Shown here one piece after another: positions 380-63,510 of a stretch of 64,000 bases of DNA; positions within the stretch are counted from its first letter, which is position 1, and each line of letters starts with the position of its first letter. The notes under the pieces are model-generated. The model was not told the origin of the DNA. It searched no databases and saw only the letters and a program-made list of their open reading frames with translations. The DNA is from Ylistrum balloti. Taxonomy: Eukaryota. Location of the stretch: positions 1-64,000 of the forward strand of contig NW_026782625.1 in assembly GCF_031769215.1 (NCBI RefSeq), read 5' to 3'. The position numbers and the translations under genes were made by a program.

Positions 380-461
380 TTGAAGCGCCAACAATGTATG
401 GTCCAGAACAAAGCAGAAAAAATATTAAATATCCACTTGTATCTATATTGACCAGTTCCAT
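380..461 (-). CDS. Gene C exon 1 (signal peptide MELVNIDTSGYLIFFLLCSGPYIVGAS); rest of gene beyond left edge
   Basis: ATG at 461, hydrophobic core, A|gtaagt donor; encodes the same peptide as 40236-40317 (one synonymous change). Confidence 0.8.
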
Positions 462-1410
462 TACGTTCTTCAGGTAACCAGATAGTTATGACATAGACTC
501 GTAACAACGTTACTTTTTCACACAAGGAAGTTTTATTTCTCACAATGCCTTTCATATAGTGACCAGGAAGACTACGTTATCAGTCAGGTACCCTTATCAC
601 ATGTTTACACATTCAGAGCAATCAATTGCCATTTTGTACATATTACTGTAGTCCCGTTTGTAGATAGTTTCACCGTTATCTCTGTTCGTGCTTTTAATAT
701 CGCACAGTATACAACGATATATCATTTTACAAGTGTTTATGTCGGTAGGTAAGTCTACTGATTGTAATATACGGTTACGTCAACATAGAAACTGTATATG
801 ACGTAGTTAAAATGCAGATTGATGCTAATTATCATACATTGTAAATGTTTGAATGTGTCAAACGGGAGATTCTGCAAGATATAAATGAAACATGATAATG
901 CCACGTTTTCAATAGAGGATTACTTATAATAAGGTGCAGTCTTTCATTTCATAATTATTATCGTTTTTATTTCAATTTCCAAAGGAAATTTTTCAAACGT
1001 CATGTTTAAGAATGGAAACAGTATGCGCGATTTTTTGCATAAACGTACTATGTTTCTATATGCTAAAATATGCATTGATTCTGATACCTATTCGCTGTGT
1101 CAAATATCAGAAGTACATGTAAATACTGTACCTAGTTTGTGCCAATGCTATCGTTACAATATTACAACCTTCATGACAATGTTAATGTTTTTATTCAAAT
1201 TATTCACTCATCCATCTATCCTTTGAACTATTTTCTTTCCAAGTTTCGCATCAAAGAACTTCTTTTTATACTACCACATGATTGGACACAAATAAGAAAA
1301 TTGACATTTTTTATTATTTGCTTTTCTCGTAATAAAACCAAAAACTGATCAAAAGGAAAGTAGGTAGACTTAATTAAGGGAGAGATTGCAAAAAAAATAT
1401 TGGAAAAAAT

Positions 1411-2152
1411 CTTTTCTAAGATACCTCCTATATGTCAGTTTACAGTACAGCTAACAGATCCTATATCGATCAGTTATGACTTTTCTAAGATACCTCCTAT
1501 ATGTCATTTTACAGTACAGCTAACAGATCCTATATCGATCAGTTATGACTTTTCTAAGATACCTCCTATATGTCAGTTTACAGTACAGCTAACAGATCCT
1601 ATATCGATCAGTTATGACTTTTCTAAGATACCTCCTATATGTCATTTTACAGTACAGCTAACAGATCCTATATCGATCAGTTATGACTTTTCTAAGATAC
1701 CTCCTATATGTCATTTTACAGTACAGCTAACAGATCCTATATCGATCAGTTATGACTTTTCTAAGATACCTCCTATATGTCAGTTTACAGTACAGCTAAC
1801 AGATCCTATATCGATCAGTTATGACTTTTCTAAGATACCTCCTATATGTCATTTTACAGTACAGCTAACAGATCCTATATCGATCAGTTATGACTTTTCT
1901 AAGATACCTCCTATATGTCATTTTACAGTACAGCTAACAGATCCTATATCGATCAGTTATGACTTTTCTAAGATACCTCCTATATGTCACTTTACAGTAC
2001 CTAACAGATCCTATATCGATCAGTTATGACTTTTCTAAGATACCTCCTATATGTCATTTTACAGTACAGCTAACAGATCCTATATCGATCAGTTATGACT
2101 TTTCTAAGATACCTCCTATATGTCATTTTACAGTACAGTTAACAGATCCTAT
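1411..2152 (+). repeat. 69-bp minisatellite, about 10.8 copies
   Basis: Units start at 1411, 1480, 1549 ... 1963, 2030 (one 2-bp deletion) and 2099; no spacers. Confidence 0.98.
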
Positions 2153-5100
2153 TTACATTTTTAAGAAACTCATTTAATGCGAACGGAGAGGGGTTATTTT
2201 AGTCTGGCTCGTAGTTCCATAGTATAATCCTTAGGGTCAAGTTGGCAAATACCGATAATTGTTTTCTTGTTTATAGGATATTAATTATCATTTCAAGCTG
2301 TTGAATGGACTTTAGATAAGTCTACTTACAAATACCTACAACTTTCACTACAATATTTAGCTTCCCAAAACTATAATAATACAATCTCCCCTTAACATGC
2401 CCTTACTTAGAACCTCGTAATTTTTATGAACCTACAAATCATGGTGTTTTGAAAAGAATGCTTTCTACAGCTGTCACTAAGTGACTGTAGAATTATTAAA
2501 GTTAAACCCCCTTATTTGACAAAATTTTAATTATGGAAAATTGACACATCGAATAAATAAATTTGCTTAACAAATACATGACAACCTGCTTATACAGGAA
2601 CTCGGTGACATTTACTCATCAGCAAATCTACATATAAAGTGTAAATTGTACTACAGATCATTCATGTTCTCACATTTTGTTGAGTAGATGTGTAAAAAAA
2701 CACTCACCAAGGAAAATATTTTCAAAAAAGAACTGACTAAATTTTAGAAGAAAAAAAACTGTACACGCAAAAGACTTCTAACATAAAATAATCACGAGTT
2801 TATTGAGCTACTAATACTTCCTATGCACGGGACACACATATAAACATACAGCTGTATGGTCTAGGAGACATATTAGTTTTTCAGAACAGAATGCAGATAC
2901 GGTGAAGGCATATTTCCTGCCGCCAGTCCGTAACTTATAGAGCAATATATTGGGAATGCCATCAGAATATTCATTTATTCAAGTCAAATATATTTGTGGT
3001 AAAATTATATGTCATATCATGTTAACTGTTTGGTGTTAGTCTAGAAATACAAAACACCTAAGAATTAATTAAGTTTAAGAGCTCTGGTAAAATAAATTAG
3101 TCCTTCATGCATATACACAAATCTACAAACAATTCATTTAGATTGAGACATATACATCAACTTTCGCCGTCCACGAATGTAACGGCCTGATTTCCACATT
3201 TATGTTGTGTGTTTCAGTCCATCCTTGTACTAAACAAAACCGATTCAACAAATAACAGATATTTTGATGGAAGTTGAACAATTTAATAAAGATAATGGAT
3301 GATATATCTATCACCTGCACACCTATCATACATAGATGAGTGAGTGATTTGCTTTGACAGTCTAAAACACTAGTTGAATACTCTTTATGGAATACTGCAC
3401 AACTAGAGCACTAAAGAGAGATAACACTGTCATTTTTACCATCTCTGACTCCGTAGATAGTTGCTCGATAACATTTTTTCGAAGTTCTGTCGTTACTTGC
3501 TCACAACAGCTTAGTGATTAAGGACCATGACTAAACGAATGCACGATTCTTTCATACTAGTGACGAATAAGTGCATTTTAATATCCCGCTCGGCGGGAAA
3601 TTTATCGGACATAAATAGTTCTAATACAGAAACTGCTAGGCAAATTTCCCTTTTACAGAATGACGAATAATATTTCACAAATAAATCGAATCAATTATCT
3701 TTCATGTGAGACAAATGCTAACTATTAAATCGCTATCATATGAAAAATACAATGTTGGAATCGTGTTAATCAGTGCACAGGTAAATACATGTATTATATT
3801 CTGAAGTAGCACCAGACCTATATAGACCGGCATAGTAAATAATGTTTCCAAACAAATACACAAATATACGTTATCATGACAACCCAAAGGGTCATACATA
3901 CCACCGACAAACCACCGCACGTCTTCTTTGTCTTAAGGACGGTAATTAACATACAGATAAACATATATAGCCAACATTATTTCTAAAATGAATTTCTAAA
4001 GAACCATTCAAGTTGCTGGTGTATCACGAATCAGTAATGGAACTTACGATACCATTCCTCAGAAATTATTGTTTTTACCTGGCATATTTATACGATAATT
4101 AAATTGTATTTAATGTTTCATAATATAAATACTATTGTTTTATTACTATTGACCATATTCAGTGGAACTTCACAGTAAAATTCAGTGAAGGATTGTTGGC
4201 AGATAAAACAACAGTATGTTAGATACTCGTACAAAAGAGTTTAGAAGTTAGGATAGGCTGGGAGGTTATAAGTTAATTTAAATCTGATGTCAGTAAATTA
4301 TATATCAATGTTTTGCCTTTGTTCATCTGATCAATTATATATTTTCAAAATTATATAATTAATGAAGGATAAGCTTATTTAATCAGGATTTGTCTCCCTT
4401 TTGTGCATATGCTACAGTTCAATGTTGAATACAAACAGTCTATTCGATTTTTATTGCCAACTTTGATAAAGATCTGGATTGTGTTCTTCACATATTAGTT
4501 TCTTCTCAAATAAAACAAGGCTGCCGGATGCATTGATATCACCAAATGTAATACAGAGTCACTATGTTCGATGGTCGGAAACAGTATGAAGATATACATA
4601 TGTACATAATTGAACAAAGTGACAGTACAACTGTAATACGTATAAAAACTAATGGTTAATCTATTTGTGTTGTGAAACGTAATACGTTTACTTATAAATC
4701 TGGACTTTTATTCATGCAATTAAAGGTTTTTTTTCTGTTAATGCCGAAATACTCATTTCAGAAAACTTAGAATATATGTATTTAAAACAAAATTATCGAT
4801 AAATCCTTCATTAAGTATGTTGAGTCAATTTTTTGTAAAATATAATCTTTAGAGATATTCACTTAAAAAATTTTATTTGACCCCAACACAGATGATTAGT
4901 TTGCAAGCTGAAGCATCTGGCAAATATGCTCACCTTTAAAAAAAATATCAACAAAACAATCTCGCTCTCCAATTGAAAATGTTTTTAGAACGTAGGCAGT
5001 ACTGCATGTGTGCCAGAAACTTCTGTTTAAATGTTAACTTTTTAAAATTTCTTCTTTGTGCTGTGCAGTGGAAGCGTTATTATCATGTTGTATGACATGC

Positions 5101-62090: not shown

Positions 62091-62410
62091 CTATAAAAAG
62101 AATATTTTTCATGTGGCATTAACATGTTTGTAATCAATTATTGTTATTTTGACGATCATTTGCATCTTCCAATTATACTTTCATTATGTTACTATCCTGT
62201 CGGGCCATGTTATGTGAAACAATTAAGTTTAGTTCGTTTAACTTTCATTCATGCATGTCACAAAATCAGTTGCTATATTTCTGTATTCCTCATAAACTGT
62301 ACACGCCGATACAGTATATCTTATCAAAAATGATAATTCGTCCAAAAGGAAAACCAACACATACACTTGTTATTTCATCTGTTAAATGAATCACTACACA
62401 TAATAGCTTG

Positions 62411-62678
62411 TGTAAGGTGACATCATTGACAGCTAACCACGCCACTTAATGTCATTTAAAATGCATTCATGAGCGAGCACGTAATTTTACAAACGAAATA
62501 AGAATGAGACGTCAGTCCGTCGGATAAGTAATGATTGCAACACACCGAGTAAGCGATGGCCAGTAATGAAATAACTGGAATGAGAGGTGCTGTATTTATA
62601 TCGGCGATGAAATAGCAAAAGTATCCTACAACACATGATTCAATGAACGGAGAGGAGCCGATCATTAGTCGGATTACA
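62411..62678 (-). mobile_element. Possible solo LTR
   Basis: TGTAA...TTACA termini and an internal TATAAAT on the minus strand; no clear TSD. Confidence 0.35.
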
Positions 62679-63249
62679 AGAAATAATAGTTGAAGGAGAA
62701 CAGTAGAGAACGTCAGCAGATGATTTTTTCCATGAAGAGTATGGTCCTTGGTGGTCGCATCAACACCATACCCTAGGGAGGCAGGGAGTTAACCCAAAAT
62801 TCAAAACTTTACAACTGGATAAATGAGACAATCACGGTTATCATACAGCTGTTGGAAAGCTATCCATGTTATTTTCGTTTTGGGAAGAGATCAAGATAAT
62901 CGACTAATTTAGAATCGTCTGTCCTTAAGGATGTGGTCGTGGTTGTATCCGATAATTGTTTAGATGATAGGTTTATAGCCAGGAGACACCAACGACACAC
63001 ATAATCACAATCCGAACTCAGATTCAATAAAAATAGGGCAACATATTAACTAAAGAAAGTTTTACATGGAGACTCCTGCAAAAATTACAAGGGGAAAAAG
63101 ACCAGGAGTTCCGGAAGAGAATATCCTTCTGTTCCCTCGATAAATTCAGTCTCTTATGAAAACTAAAACAAATCAGACACACGCTGGATAGAGTTTGTTC
63201 CCTTAAGTTATTCATTAGGGTGAAAGATATTTCAGAACACTGTACAAAC

Positions 63250-63510
63250 CTTCTAGTACTTGAACTTCACACAGCTCAATAACTGCATTACTATCCGAAT
63301 AATACGAAGGAGGTGAAGGCCGGAACTCAGCAGGACGTTTGTTGAAAAATATGACGTATTGACCTGAGACAGGACATGATAGTGACACAATGTAGGAGGG
63401 CAGACCAGGTCCGTGGTCATGGTAACATAAATAGTCTCGACTCAGCGCTTGGGAGTTATTATAGGAACTGTTTGATATATAGAGGTAAAACCCGGACATT
63501 TGAAAGGTGT
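63250..63510 (-). CDS. Gene A FTP second half (TFQMSGFYLY...GQYVIFFN...IELCEVQVLE)
   Basis: 261 nt, tttag/gtttgt; paralog of 30306-30566. Confidence 0.9.

Follow-up and report, generated by a model that had tools for sequence, protein, structure and literature searches.

A tandem array of genes for putative membrane receptors with F-type lectin heads, an EGF stalk and an ITAM-like tail in the saucer scallop Ylistrum balloti

The window analysed covers the initial 64 kb of a Ylistrum balloti (saucer scallop) contig and shares its numbering with JAUZWB010001211.1 of GCA_031769215.1. All features in it are located on the minus strand. Three genes are represented: gene B completely, its upstream paralog, gene A, by the 3' two-thirds, and its downstream paralog, gene C, by exon 1 alone. 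The 5' part of gene A lies beyond position 64000, and the gene begins in the window with the exon for the C-terminal half of its second F-type lectin domain (FTLD2; 63510-63250). Gene C is truncated by the contig start itself, and its start codon and signal-peptide exon (380..461) is the sole part present. This exon encodes the same peptide as exon 1 of gene B, with one synonymous change, and lies within a 92%-identical duplicated block (53-1409 / 39914-41290). The A/B and B/C junctions are a segmental duplication (53-8747 versus 39914-49548, identity 78-92%). The three head-to-tail paralogs of the original prediction are confirmed, with B as the only complete gene.

Gene B consists of 20 exons with a CDS of 2883 nt, which after splicing form a single ORF of 960 aa. 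All splice sites are AG/GT, exon phases match along the whole gene, and every junction as far as the linker is in phase 1. The product starts with a signal peptide and an F-type lectin domain, continues with a double EGF and another F-type lectin domain, and ends with ten stalk EGF modules, a linker, a transmembrane helix and a tail, precisely the SP-FTP-EGF2-FTP-(EGF)x10-TM-short tail that had been predicted. Exon 1 (40236..40317) carries the ATG and a signal peptide (27 aa + 1 nt) with a hydrophobic core, and is the same as the start of the RefSeq model P0152. The first lectin domain is encoded by exon 2 (39249..39458; N-half, Pfam F5_F8_type_C / F5_F8_type_C_2, AG/GT, phase 1) and exon 3 (36587..36820; C-half). 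Exon 4 (32384..32620) encodes the two EGF modules separating the lectin domains, and exons 5 (31153..31371) and 6 (30306..30566) encode the N-half and C-half of FTLD2, respectively.

The stalk exons of gene B follow at 26555..26689 (EGF1; 135 nt, phase 1-1), 25780..25914 (EGF2, a copy inside a 780-bp tandem unit), 24997..25131 (EGF3, 135/135 nt the same as EGF2), 23165..23299 (EGF4), 21261..21395 (EGF5), 16303..16437 (EGF6), 15638..15772 (EGF7), 14804..14938 (EGF8), 12684..12818 (EGF9) and 10266..10400 (EGF10), the last two with 100% nucleotide identity. Two decayed EGF pseudo-exons are also present, one (13882..14046) having lost the C-terminal half of the module, the other (8696..8743) a truncated remnant whose frame clashes with its neighbours and which is presumably skipped. 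The former decayed exon also terminates the annotated paralog protein P0154. Among the candidates for the linker exon, 8496..8551 (56 nt, phase 1 to 0) alone has good splice signals and is conserved in both genes; this predicted exon closes the frame of gene B, and the Mizuhopecten gene has a short phase 1-to-0 linker exon at the equivalent place. The EGF10-linker-TM junctions are likewise predictions. The transmembrane exon (8182..8270) encodes a helix with a mean Kyte-Doolittle value of 2.37 over 19 aa and a conserved Asn, and is followed by a juxtamembrane cytoplasmic exon (7931..7986) and the last coding exon (6015..6103), which contains the tail motif YEGL-x11-YDTI and the stop codon. The cytoplasmic tail comprises 50 aa. 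Signal peptide and membrane helix are the only two hydrophobic peaks, and the product is predicted to be a type-I membrane protein.

Residues 1-594 of gene B share 100% identity with the RefSeq protein XP_060081732.1 ('MEGF10, partial'), as expected from the suggestion that the architecture already exists in automated bivalve annotations. This model stops at EGF8; its final 112 residues are EGF exons read out of frame, and EGF9-10, linker, membrane helix and tail are missing from it. Over its full length (1-960) gene B aligns end to end with residues 1-972 of Mizuhopecten XP_021356822.1 at 62% identity.

The part of gene A within the window comprises 13 coding exons and reads open as far as the stop codon. 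The FTLD2 C-half exon (63250..63510) is followed by eight intact 135-nt stalk exons, the number originally counted: 61956..62090 (exon 1), 58758..58892 (exon 2, opening copy 1 of a 2.55-kb two-exon unit), 58271..58405 (exon 3), 56209..56343 (exon 4, copy 2 of the unit), 55716..55850 (exon 5), 53654..53788 (exon 6, copy 3), 53164..53298 (exon 7) and 51314..51448 (exon 8). Two frameshifted EGF remnants occur at 50690..50805, in the position of gene B exon 10, and at 49499..49634 (136 nt). The predicted linker exon (49295..49350) is the same as that of gene B in 53/56 nt, and transmembrane (49015..49109), juxtamembrane (48766..48821; 55/56 nt the same as gene B) and tail exons (47797..47885; 88/89 nt, with YEGL-x11-YDTI and the stop codon) complete the gene. 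The public annotation of the contig has no call for gene A.

Between A and B the tail exon is 99% and the juxtamembrane exon 98% identical, whereas the adjacent non-coding DNA is 78-87% identical. The FTLD2 C-half exon shares 82% identity at the protein level, and in the basic sugar-binding triad gene A has Gln in third place instead of Arg. The first description, a lectin exon differing at key positions beside near-identical signal-peptide (B/C) and tail (A/B) exons, is confirmed. dN/dS values are 0.28-0.44 for most exons; the exception is the FTLD2 N-half exon, exon 5, the fastest-evolving of gene B, with 1.42 for B versus paralog D (small counts). The claim that the locus is rapidly evolving therefore holds in part, for this lectin exon (dN/dS 1.4, small counts), but not for most exons, whose values of 0.28-0.44 indicate genes under constraint.

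By sequence and predicted fold both lectin domains are genuine F-type lectin domains, the identity first proposed. Domain 1 of gene B matches the F-lectin FBP32 (PDB 3cqo) with an E-value of 6e-25 and domain 2 with 3e-10, and eel agglutinin (1k12) is matched at 5.5e-9. The AlphaFold model (pLDDT 80) has 3cqo as its best Foldseek match (5e-23), and single-domain F-lectins give TM values of 0.73-0.83. Both domains of gene B align with the sugar-binding triad His/Arg/Arg. They depart from the strict fucose motif HX24RXDX4(R/K), whose Asp is Ser in domain 1 and Asn in domain 2, and the fucose-stacking Cys-Cys pair is missing; therefore the ligand may be other than simple fucose.

Each stalk unit contains eight Cys (Pfam EGF_STAB1-2, 47 bits) and is classified from its sequence as an 8-Cys MEGF/stabilin-type (laminin/MEGF-type) EGF module. 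Stalk length changes because of its modular build: every module corresponds to a single symmetrical phase-1 exon of 135 nt, which is duplicated in tandem, decays, or is homogenised by gene conversion, signs of which were seen among the stalk exons. The exon units of EGF2 and EGF3 in gene B are 98% alike, older duplications have flanks of 76-90% identity, and paralog D, on another contig, has different copy numbers of stalk units. Repeat structure and an exon tree bear out the independent expansion of each stalk: those of A and B grew through separate tandem exon duplications. The family is tandemly duplicated, and exon duplication alters stalk length within and between the paralogs (A, B, D).

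Four features had escaped the original prediction: the conserved ITAM-like tail motif, the conserved Asn in the membrane helix, the existence of relatives with tyrosine phosphatase tails, and the absence of the EMI domain and NPxY motif by which the MEGF10/Draper/CED-1 family is defined. The tyrosine pair YEGL-x11-YDTI is the same in A and B. The pattern Y[ED]x[LI]-x11-YD[TS][IL] occurs in five of the six tail-bearing scallop relatives, and comparable YxxL...YxxL/I pairs occur in FTLD-TM proteins of oyster, mussel, abalone and Gigantopelta. In the ITAM-like motif, position -3 is not occupied by an acidic residue. The consensus for ITAMs allows a spacing of 6-12 residues, and oyster haemocytes have been shown to signal through ITAM-Syk-ERK (PMC6994640). 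In our judgement the locus probably, though by no means certainly, belongs to a tandem array of intact scallop genes whose products are type-I membrane glycoproteins, receptors with lectin heads, an EGF stalk and an ITAM-like tail. How the genes are built, which domains they encode, the conservation of the motifs and the mode of stalk evolution are established; we infer the mode of action as follows. Glycans on microbes or cells, fucose-containing or related, would be the ligands of the lectin heads, and multivalent ligands would cluster the receptors. Docking of a Syk/Shark-type tandem-SH2 kinase would follow phosphorylation of the two tail tyrosines by a Src-type kinase. The outcome would be uptake or activation, as for Draper/MEGF10, Dectin-type lectin receptors and oyster CgIgR.

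Alternatively, this protein may act as a lectin receptor in endocytosis/scavenging or adhesion that carries bound glycoconjugates inward or holds cells together, with the tyrosine motifs serving as YxxPhi sorting signals for clathrin adaptors and no Syk-type signalling. YEGL and YDTI each also fit YxxPhi, the best EGF profile is that of stabilin, a scavenger receptor, the tail of just 50 aa lacks NPxY and other docking sites, and the F-lectin protein 'furrowed' works in adhesion (PMC12221842). We consider this reading rather unlikely: the 11-residue spacing of the tyrosines is fixed across paralogs of 45-62% identity, although independent sorting signals need no such spacing, and related genes join a like ectodomain to tyrosine phosphatases, which points to phosphotyrosine signalling. 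A role in gamete recognition or allorecognition, in which the lectin heads bind egg-coat or conspecific glycans and diversity serves mating or self/non-self discrimination, is improbable. It would fit the raised dN in one lectin exon and the altered triad residue of gene A, and has a precedent in the F-type lectin repeats of oyster sperm bindin, which are highly diversified and variable in number (PMC12221842). Bindin, however, is secreted, acrosomal and made of lectin repeats only, whereas the scallop proteins possess a stalk of EGF modules, a membrane helix and a tail of signalling type, and purifying selection acts on most of their lectin sequence.

That the array is partly dead or artefactual, with unexpressed pseudogene copies, mis-assembled haplotypes and stalk-length variation of no biological meaning, is likewise improbable. 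Four decayed EGF exons occur across A and B, the RefSeq entry for B is a partial model that is out of frame at its end, and gene A is uncalled. The 98% similarity of the EGF2 and EGF3 units is in the bivalve allelic range, so near-identical tandem exon copies could be inflated by a two-haplotype assembly. Against this, the 20 coding exons of B and the 13 of A in the window are open with canonical splice sites while the surrounding DNA has diverged by 13-22%, and dN/dS is below 0.5. The older duplications with 76-90% identical flanks are incompatible with haplotype artefacts, and paralog D differs on its separate contig in the copy numbers of the same units.

The receptor family includes, besides XP_060081732.1 from Ylistrum, Mizuhopecten yessoensis XP_021356822.1 ('MEGF11 isoform X2'), which has the same architecture and is collinear end to end, and the 'MEGF10' and 'draper-like' models of Argopecten irradians. 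The MEGF10, MEGF11 and draper-like names of these scallop proteins are automatic only, and a literature search found no paper on the family. True membership in MEGF10/Draper/CED-1 was considered and rejected because both the EMI domain and the NPxY motif are absent. The scallop family is built along similar lines but stands outside that family. Both are single-pass proteins in which 8-Cys EGF modules form a rod and the tail carries tyrosine motifs; Draper and MEGF10 signal via ITAM, Src and Syk/Shark (PMC8092387), and the scallop spacing of 11 falls within the 6-12 consensus. The binding end of the scallop proteins, in contrast, consists of two lectin domains, and their tail is far shorter.

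Striped bass FBP32 (3cqo) and the eel agglutinin AAA (1k12) share the domain family, the fold and the His/Arg/Arg triad. FBP32 also has two lectin domains per chain, and its C-terminal domain has similar spacing and likewise lacks the Cys-Cys pair. They are, however, small soluble serum lectins, whereas the scallop lectins are membrane-anchored on a long stalk, with two EGF modules between the domains and the acidic residue of RXD substituted. Vertebrate Dectin-type receptors and oyster CgIgR, ITAM or hemITAM pattern-recognition receptors, also pair a tail tyrosine motif with an ectodomain that binds carbohydrates or microbes; their C-type lectin or Ig ectodomains are unrelated to F-type lectin and EGF. 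Ectodomain modules of the same kind, F-type lectin and EGF, are found in molluscan receptor tyrosine phosphatases, for example Ylistrum 'RPTP gamma-like' P0163, Argopecten P0217 and Haliotis 'RPTP epsilon-like', in which an FTLD is followed by the same 45-aa EGF units (37-48% identity). In Mizuhopecten a family member is followed, 2 kb downstream, by an EGF-phosphatase gene. The membrane helix of these relatives lacks the Asn, and they carry phosphatase domain(s) where the scallop receptors have the short tyrosine-motif tail. In oyster bindin, a secreted protein, the number of lectin repeats varies, whereas in the membrane-anchored scallop receptors two lectin domains are fixed and the EGF stalk varies.

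The analysis shows an intact, conserved and tandemly duplicated gene family, whose proteins cross the membrane once, carry lectin heads on an EGF stalk and have two conserved tyrosines in the tail. The DNA of the window is AT-rich (32-37% GC) and contains no N. The RefSeq gene range 14804-40317 on JAUZWB010001211.1 (GCA_031769215.1) coincides with the window coordinates; the window therefore represents the initial 64 kb of a scallop contig that is 89.7 kb long. Throughout the window coding features lie on the minus strand only. Gene A runs from 63510 down to 47797, from the second F-type lectin domain (FTLD2) to the stop codon, with its 5' part outside the window, and gene B, from 40317 down to 6015, is complete; gene C is represented by exon 1 (461-380), its remainder being cut off by the contig end. 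The three head-to-tail paralogs of the original prediction are thus present in that arrangement, but gene B alone is a complete copy. In a self-comparison 53-8747 is paralogous to 39914-49548 with 78-92% identity, and the duplicated block, present twice, consists of the 3' exons of one gene, the spacer and the promoter and exon 1 of the next gene. The 27 residues encoded by exon 1 are identical in genes C and B, and the two exons differ by one synonymous change. The exons of gene A in the window (FTLD2 C-half, eight intact EGF exons of 135 nt, linker, transmembrane exon, juxtamembrane exon and tail) are open to the stop codon; two additional EGF exons are frameshifted remnants. The spacer between the gene B 3' end and the gene C promoter contains a 69-bp minisatellite at 1411-2152 (10.8 copies, 98% identity), of whose unit a single diverged copy is found in the spacer between genes A and B at about 44222-44370.

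The exon borders of gene B were set from homology to scallop proteins and from splice signals. The gene consists of 20 exons with AG/GT borders throughout and compatible phases, all junctions up to the linker being in phase 1, and its coding sequence of 2883 nt gives a single open frame of 960 residues. The protein comprises a signal peptide (residues 1-27), the first lectin domain, FTLD1 (29-176), two EGF modules (177-250), FTLD2 (258-414), ten EGF modules of 45 residues each (415-864), a linker of 19 residues, a membrane helix (888-910) and a tail of 50 residues; signal peptide and membrane helix were called from hydropathy and homology. Each lectin domain is encoded by two exons and each stalk module by one exon of 135 nt. 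Residues 1-960 are collinear with residues 1-972 of Mizuhopecten yessoensis XP_021356822.1 at 62% identity, and this end-to-end match indicates that different scallop genera have kept the architecture.

The weakest step of the model is the linker exon at 8551-8496, which is predicted from sequence. Among the candidates with good signals it alone is kept in A as well as in B (53/56 nt); it also re-establishes the reading frame, and a Mizuhopecten gene has a short exon with the same phase behaviour. A truncated EGF piece at 8743-8696 was tried as the last stalk exon and rejected because its frame does not fit in either gene; the 56-nt linker, kept in A and B and with a Mizuhopecten counterpart, was also preferred to an upstream acceptor that would fuse EGF10 to an extended transmembrane exon. 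In addition to this truncated exon, gene B contains a decayed EGF exon at about 14046-13882. A T-rich tract (6100-6135) lies directly upstream of the tail exon, and the intron that separates stalk exons 4 and 5 contains the remnant of a DDE_3 (Tc1/mariner-type) transposase ORF on the plus strand (21948-22292, Pfam 1.8e-12). A stretch of about 400 bp in intron 1 (39600-40100) matches many overlapping sites at 66-68% in intron 1 of paralog E (L003, 10746-15936); it is a repeated intronic element, for which TRF gave no report at a score of at least 150.

The public annotation of gene B is wrong, being partial and out of frame at its C-terminus. The RefSeq model XP_060081732.1 ends at EGF exon 8, and in its last 112 residues EGF exons 5, 7 and 8 are read out of frame. 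On the minus strand the EGF exons have an open +1 frame at 21201-21392, 15600-15800 and 14800-14940, and the RefSeq peptide read from it contains VIVLTLTVTGG. Two Argopecten models (P0037 and P0153) contain the same type of out-of-frame peptide, which looks like a recurring annotation error for this receptor family. The upstream paralog, gene A, appears to be without any public annotation. The annotated protein of gene D (P0154, locus L002) terminates in a decayed EGF exon, beyond which intact EGF exons lie.

The history of the stalk was reconstructed from an exon tree and a repeat map. In gene A a two-exon unit of 2.55 kb was tripled, with neighbouring copies 96.6% identical by BLAST, a figure to be preferred to anchor-based identities, which are depressed by indels. 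In gene B a one-exon unit of 0.78 kb was tripled (copies 95-98% identical, EGF exons 2 and 3 identical), and two other one-exon units were duplicated, with identities of 89% and about 80%. The youngest copies differ by about 2%, inside the range of allelic divergence in bivalves. None of these duplications is common to A and B, which indicates that the stalks expanded independently, as had been proposed; the outermost and innermost stalk modules of the two genes are still positionally homologous. In gene B, EGF exons 9 and 10 agree in 135/135 nt within a 250-bp block of 100% identity (12629-12878 and 10211-10460), the flanks of which are 76-80% alike by one figure and 70-90% by another; such a block within diverged flanks points to a short gene-conversion tract, which is probably its origin. 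The 2.55-kb unit of gene A also contains identical pairs of non-EGF ORFs on the minus strand (54007-54210 and 56562-56765; 54687-54878 and 57241-57432).

Gene D (L002, JAUZWB010001157.1, 736835-781125) is collinear with gene B at 77-98% identity and carries one 0.78-kb unit as compared with three in B, and at least three EGF9/10 units as compared with two. Its identity to gene B is mosaic, at 77-81% in part of the introns and 97-98% in the region of EGF exons 7-8, which suggests exchange between paralogs on different contigs. Since all stalk exons are symmetrical (phase 1-1, 135 nt), the frame would be kept whichever of them were spliced together. For a Mizuhopecten relative at greater distance, RefSeq has two isoforms whose difference amounts to about one EGF module. 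The locus displays the evolution of receptor length: each module is a single symmetrical exon, and young tandem duplicates, decayed exons and short tracts of conversion occur together.

Judged from profile matches and from a structural model, the heads of gene B are F-type lectins at the level of family and fold. FTLD1 matches FBP32 of striped bass (3cqo, E 6e-25) and eel agglutinin (1k12, 5.5e-9), and FTLD2 matches 3cqo (E 3.4e-10), lectinolysin (4e-7) and bacterial fucose-binding modules. The Pfam check placed both domains, predicted as FTP domains, in the F5_F8_type_C family (F5_F8_type_C / F5_F8_type_C_2). The AlphaFold model of the head has a mean pLDDT of 80 and 3cqo as top Foldseek match (5e-23); compared with single F-lectin domains the predicted head reaches TM scores, normalised to target length, of 0.73 (1k12), 0.83 (3lei) and 0.83 (2j1r).

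In F-type lectins a basic triad of His, Arg and Arg (Lys) binds the 4-OH of fucose. In HMMER alignments to FBP32/AAA both domains of gene B retain the His (of CSHT), the second residue as the Arg of YRR in FTLD1 or YRQ in FTLD2, and the third as the Arg in ARLKG or FRMSG. In FTLD2 of gene A the third residue is Gln instead of Arg, which bears out the expectation that the lectin exon differs at a key position. The strict motif, HX24RXDX4(R/K) with an acidic residue and an adjacent Cys-Cys (PMC5712786), is not found as such in gene B, its Asp being replaced by Ser in FTLD1 and by Asn in FTLD2. Neither domain of gene B has the Cys-Cys pair, and the segment is shorter by one residue; in this they resemble the C-terminal domain of FBP32. 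The calcium motif h2DGx corresponds to AVDGV in both domains, with Asp-Gly kept and a hydrophobic last position instead of N/D/S. Sugar binding by the heads of gene B is likely.

Nei-Gojobori dN/dS ratios were calculated per exon and range from 0.36 to 0.44 for B against D and from 0.28 to 0.42 for B against E, with 0.42 for B against A in the FTLD2 C-half. The FTLD2 N-half of B against D gives a ratio of 1.4 (dN 0.23, dS 0.16; 33 non-synonymous and 7 synonymous changes), with a dN some threefold that of the other exons and a comparable dS. By these values the receptor family is constrained overall, with a hint of diversification in one lectin exon; the rapid evolution of the original prediction would be confined to the FTLD2 N-half of this pair, and does not extend to the other exons (0.28-0.44). 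Between A and B the differences in the FTLD2 C-half are clustered in its last 80 nt. The most conserved parts of the two genes are the tail (88/89 nt) and the juxtamembrane exon (55/56 nt), compared with 78-87% in adjacent non-coding DNA.

The tail of gene B contains YEGL and, after 11 residues, YDTI. The pattern Y[ED]x[LI]-x11-YD[TS][IL] is present in five of six tail-bearing scallop relatives, and the FTLD-TM proteins of oysters, mussels, abalone and Gigantopelta include some with comparable tyrosine pairs. A homology search with the tail alone (residues 345-422 of protein P0114) returned no match besides the query. The membrane helix of all scallop members contains a conserved Asn (CNIGL), and Asn is also found in the predicted helices of several oyster relatives; this residue suggests helix-helix association.

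In the mechanism considered most likely, the lectin heads would bind glycans, multivalent ligands would cluster the receptor, and the tail tyrosines would be phosphorylated so that a Syk-type kinase could dock and lead to uptake or activation. By analogy such a mechanism would resemble that of Draper/MEGF10 and of lectin ITAM receptors. The main rival is a scavenger or adhesion receptor in which the tail tyrosines serve as YxxPhi endocytic signals only. As in a classical ITAM (D/E-x-x-Y-x-x-L/I, 6-12 residues, Y-x-x-L/I), two YxxL/I motifs are found 11 residues apart, inside the consensus spacing of 6-12 residues quoted for the oyster receptor CgIgR, and the acidic residue of a classical ITAM at position -3 is missing, DDRRNY being acidic at -4 and -5. 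In oyster haemocytes CgIgR signals via Syk and ERK (PMC6994640).

Less likely are a role in gamete recognition and an array that is in part dead or mis-assembled.

Some relatives join a similar FTLD-EGF ectodomain to tyrosine-phosphatase domains by way of a different membrane helix; PF00102 (Y_phosphatase) was found in P0163, a Ylistrum 'RPTP gamma-like' protein, and in P0217, a relative from Argopecten. A cytoplasmic Y_phosphatase domain is absent from A and B, which reach the stop codon 50 residues past the membrane helix. On Mizuhopecten NEDP02003363.1 the gene for XP_021356726.1 covers about 105 kb, and a gene for a receptor with EGF modules and tyrosine phosphatase follows 2 kb downstream on the same strand. 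A broader reading, which we consider improbable, would be a molluscan paired-receptor system of clustered FTLD-EGF-rod genes with either an ITAM-like activating tail (Asn helix) or tyrosine-phosphatase domains and with tuned stalk height. Adjustment of the height would come from symmetrical 135-nt exons being gained, lost, converted or skipped. Triggering of Draper-type and immune ITAM receptors comes about when bulky phosphatases are excluded by their size (PMC6219719), and on that principle the length of the rod would decide between contacts that trigger and contacts that are silenced. If true, the system would be an invertebrate counterpart of paired activating and inhibitory immune receptors, acting via kinetic segregation.

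Bivalves depend on germline-encoded recognition molecules, and most of the families known to have expanded in them (C1q, FREP, C-type lectins) consist of secreted proteins. In the scallop protein a lectin is connected directly with a membrane helix and with a conserved tyrosine motif, which offers a testable path from glycan recognition to haemocyte signalling.

The architecture is already present in public annotation and is therefore not a discovery of new genes. The literature search found no functional paper on the FTLD-EGF-TM architecture, and no paper on the Ylistrum nuclear genome was among the matches listed; the earlier caution that the architecture may not be new, though without functional description, was well placed. 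The excerpts of two F-type lectin reviews name C-type lectin, pentraxin, CCP, transmembrane and FA58C as partners (PMC5712786, PMC12221842), and in these excerpts an EGF-stalk receptor with a tyrosine-motif tail is not mentioned. New here are the corrected gene model and three testable features: the ITAM-like motif, the Asn of the membrane helix and the counterparts with phosphatase tails.

With MEGF10, Draper and CED-1 the gene B protein has in common an array of 8-Cys EGF modules and a single membrane helix, and their cytoplasmic ITAM/YxxL is matched by YEGL-x11-YDTI at the level of the motif only. The EMI domain and NPxY motif that define these proteins have no counterpart in gene B: Pfam detected no EMI domain in residues 1-594 of P0152 (XP_060081732.1, identical to gene B over these residues) or in P0151, the N-terminal position being taken by a lectin domain, and the 50-residue tail of gene B contains no NPxY. 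For want of both, the name 'MEGF10' is misleading, and so are the automatic names MEGF11, draper-like and CED-1-like. By its domains as predicted, the gene B protein is a member of the F-type lectin family, and the scallop protein represents a hitherto undescribed variant of an established receptor plan.
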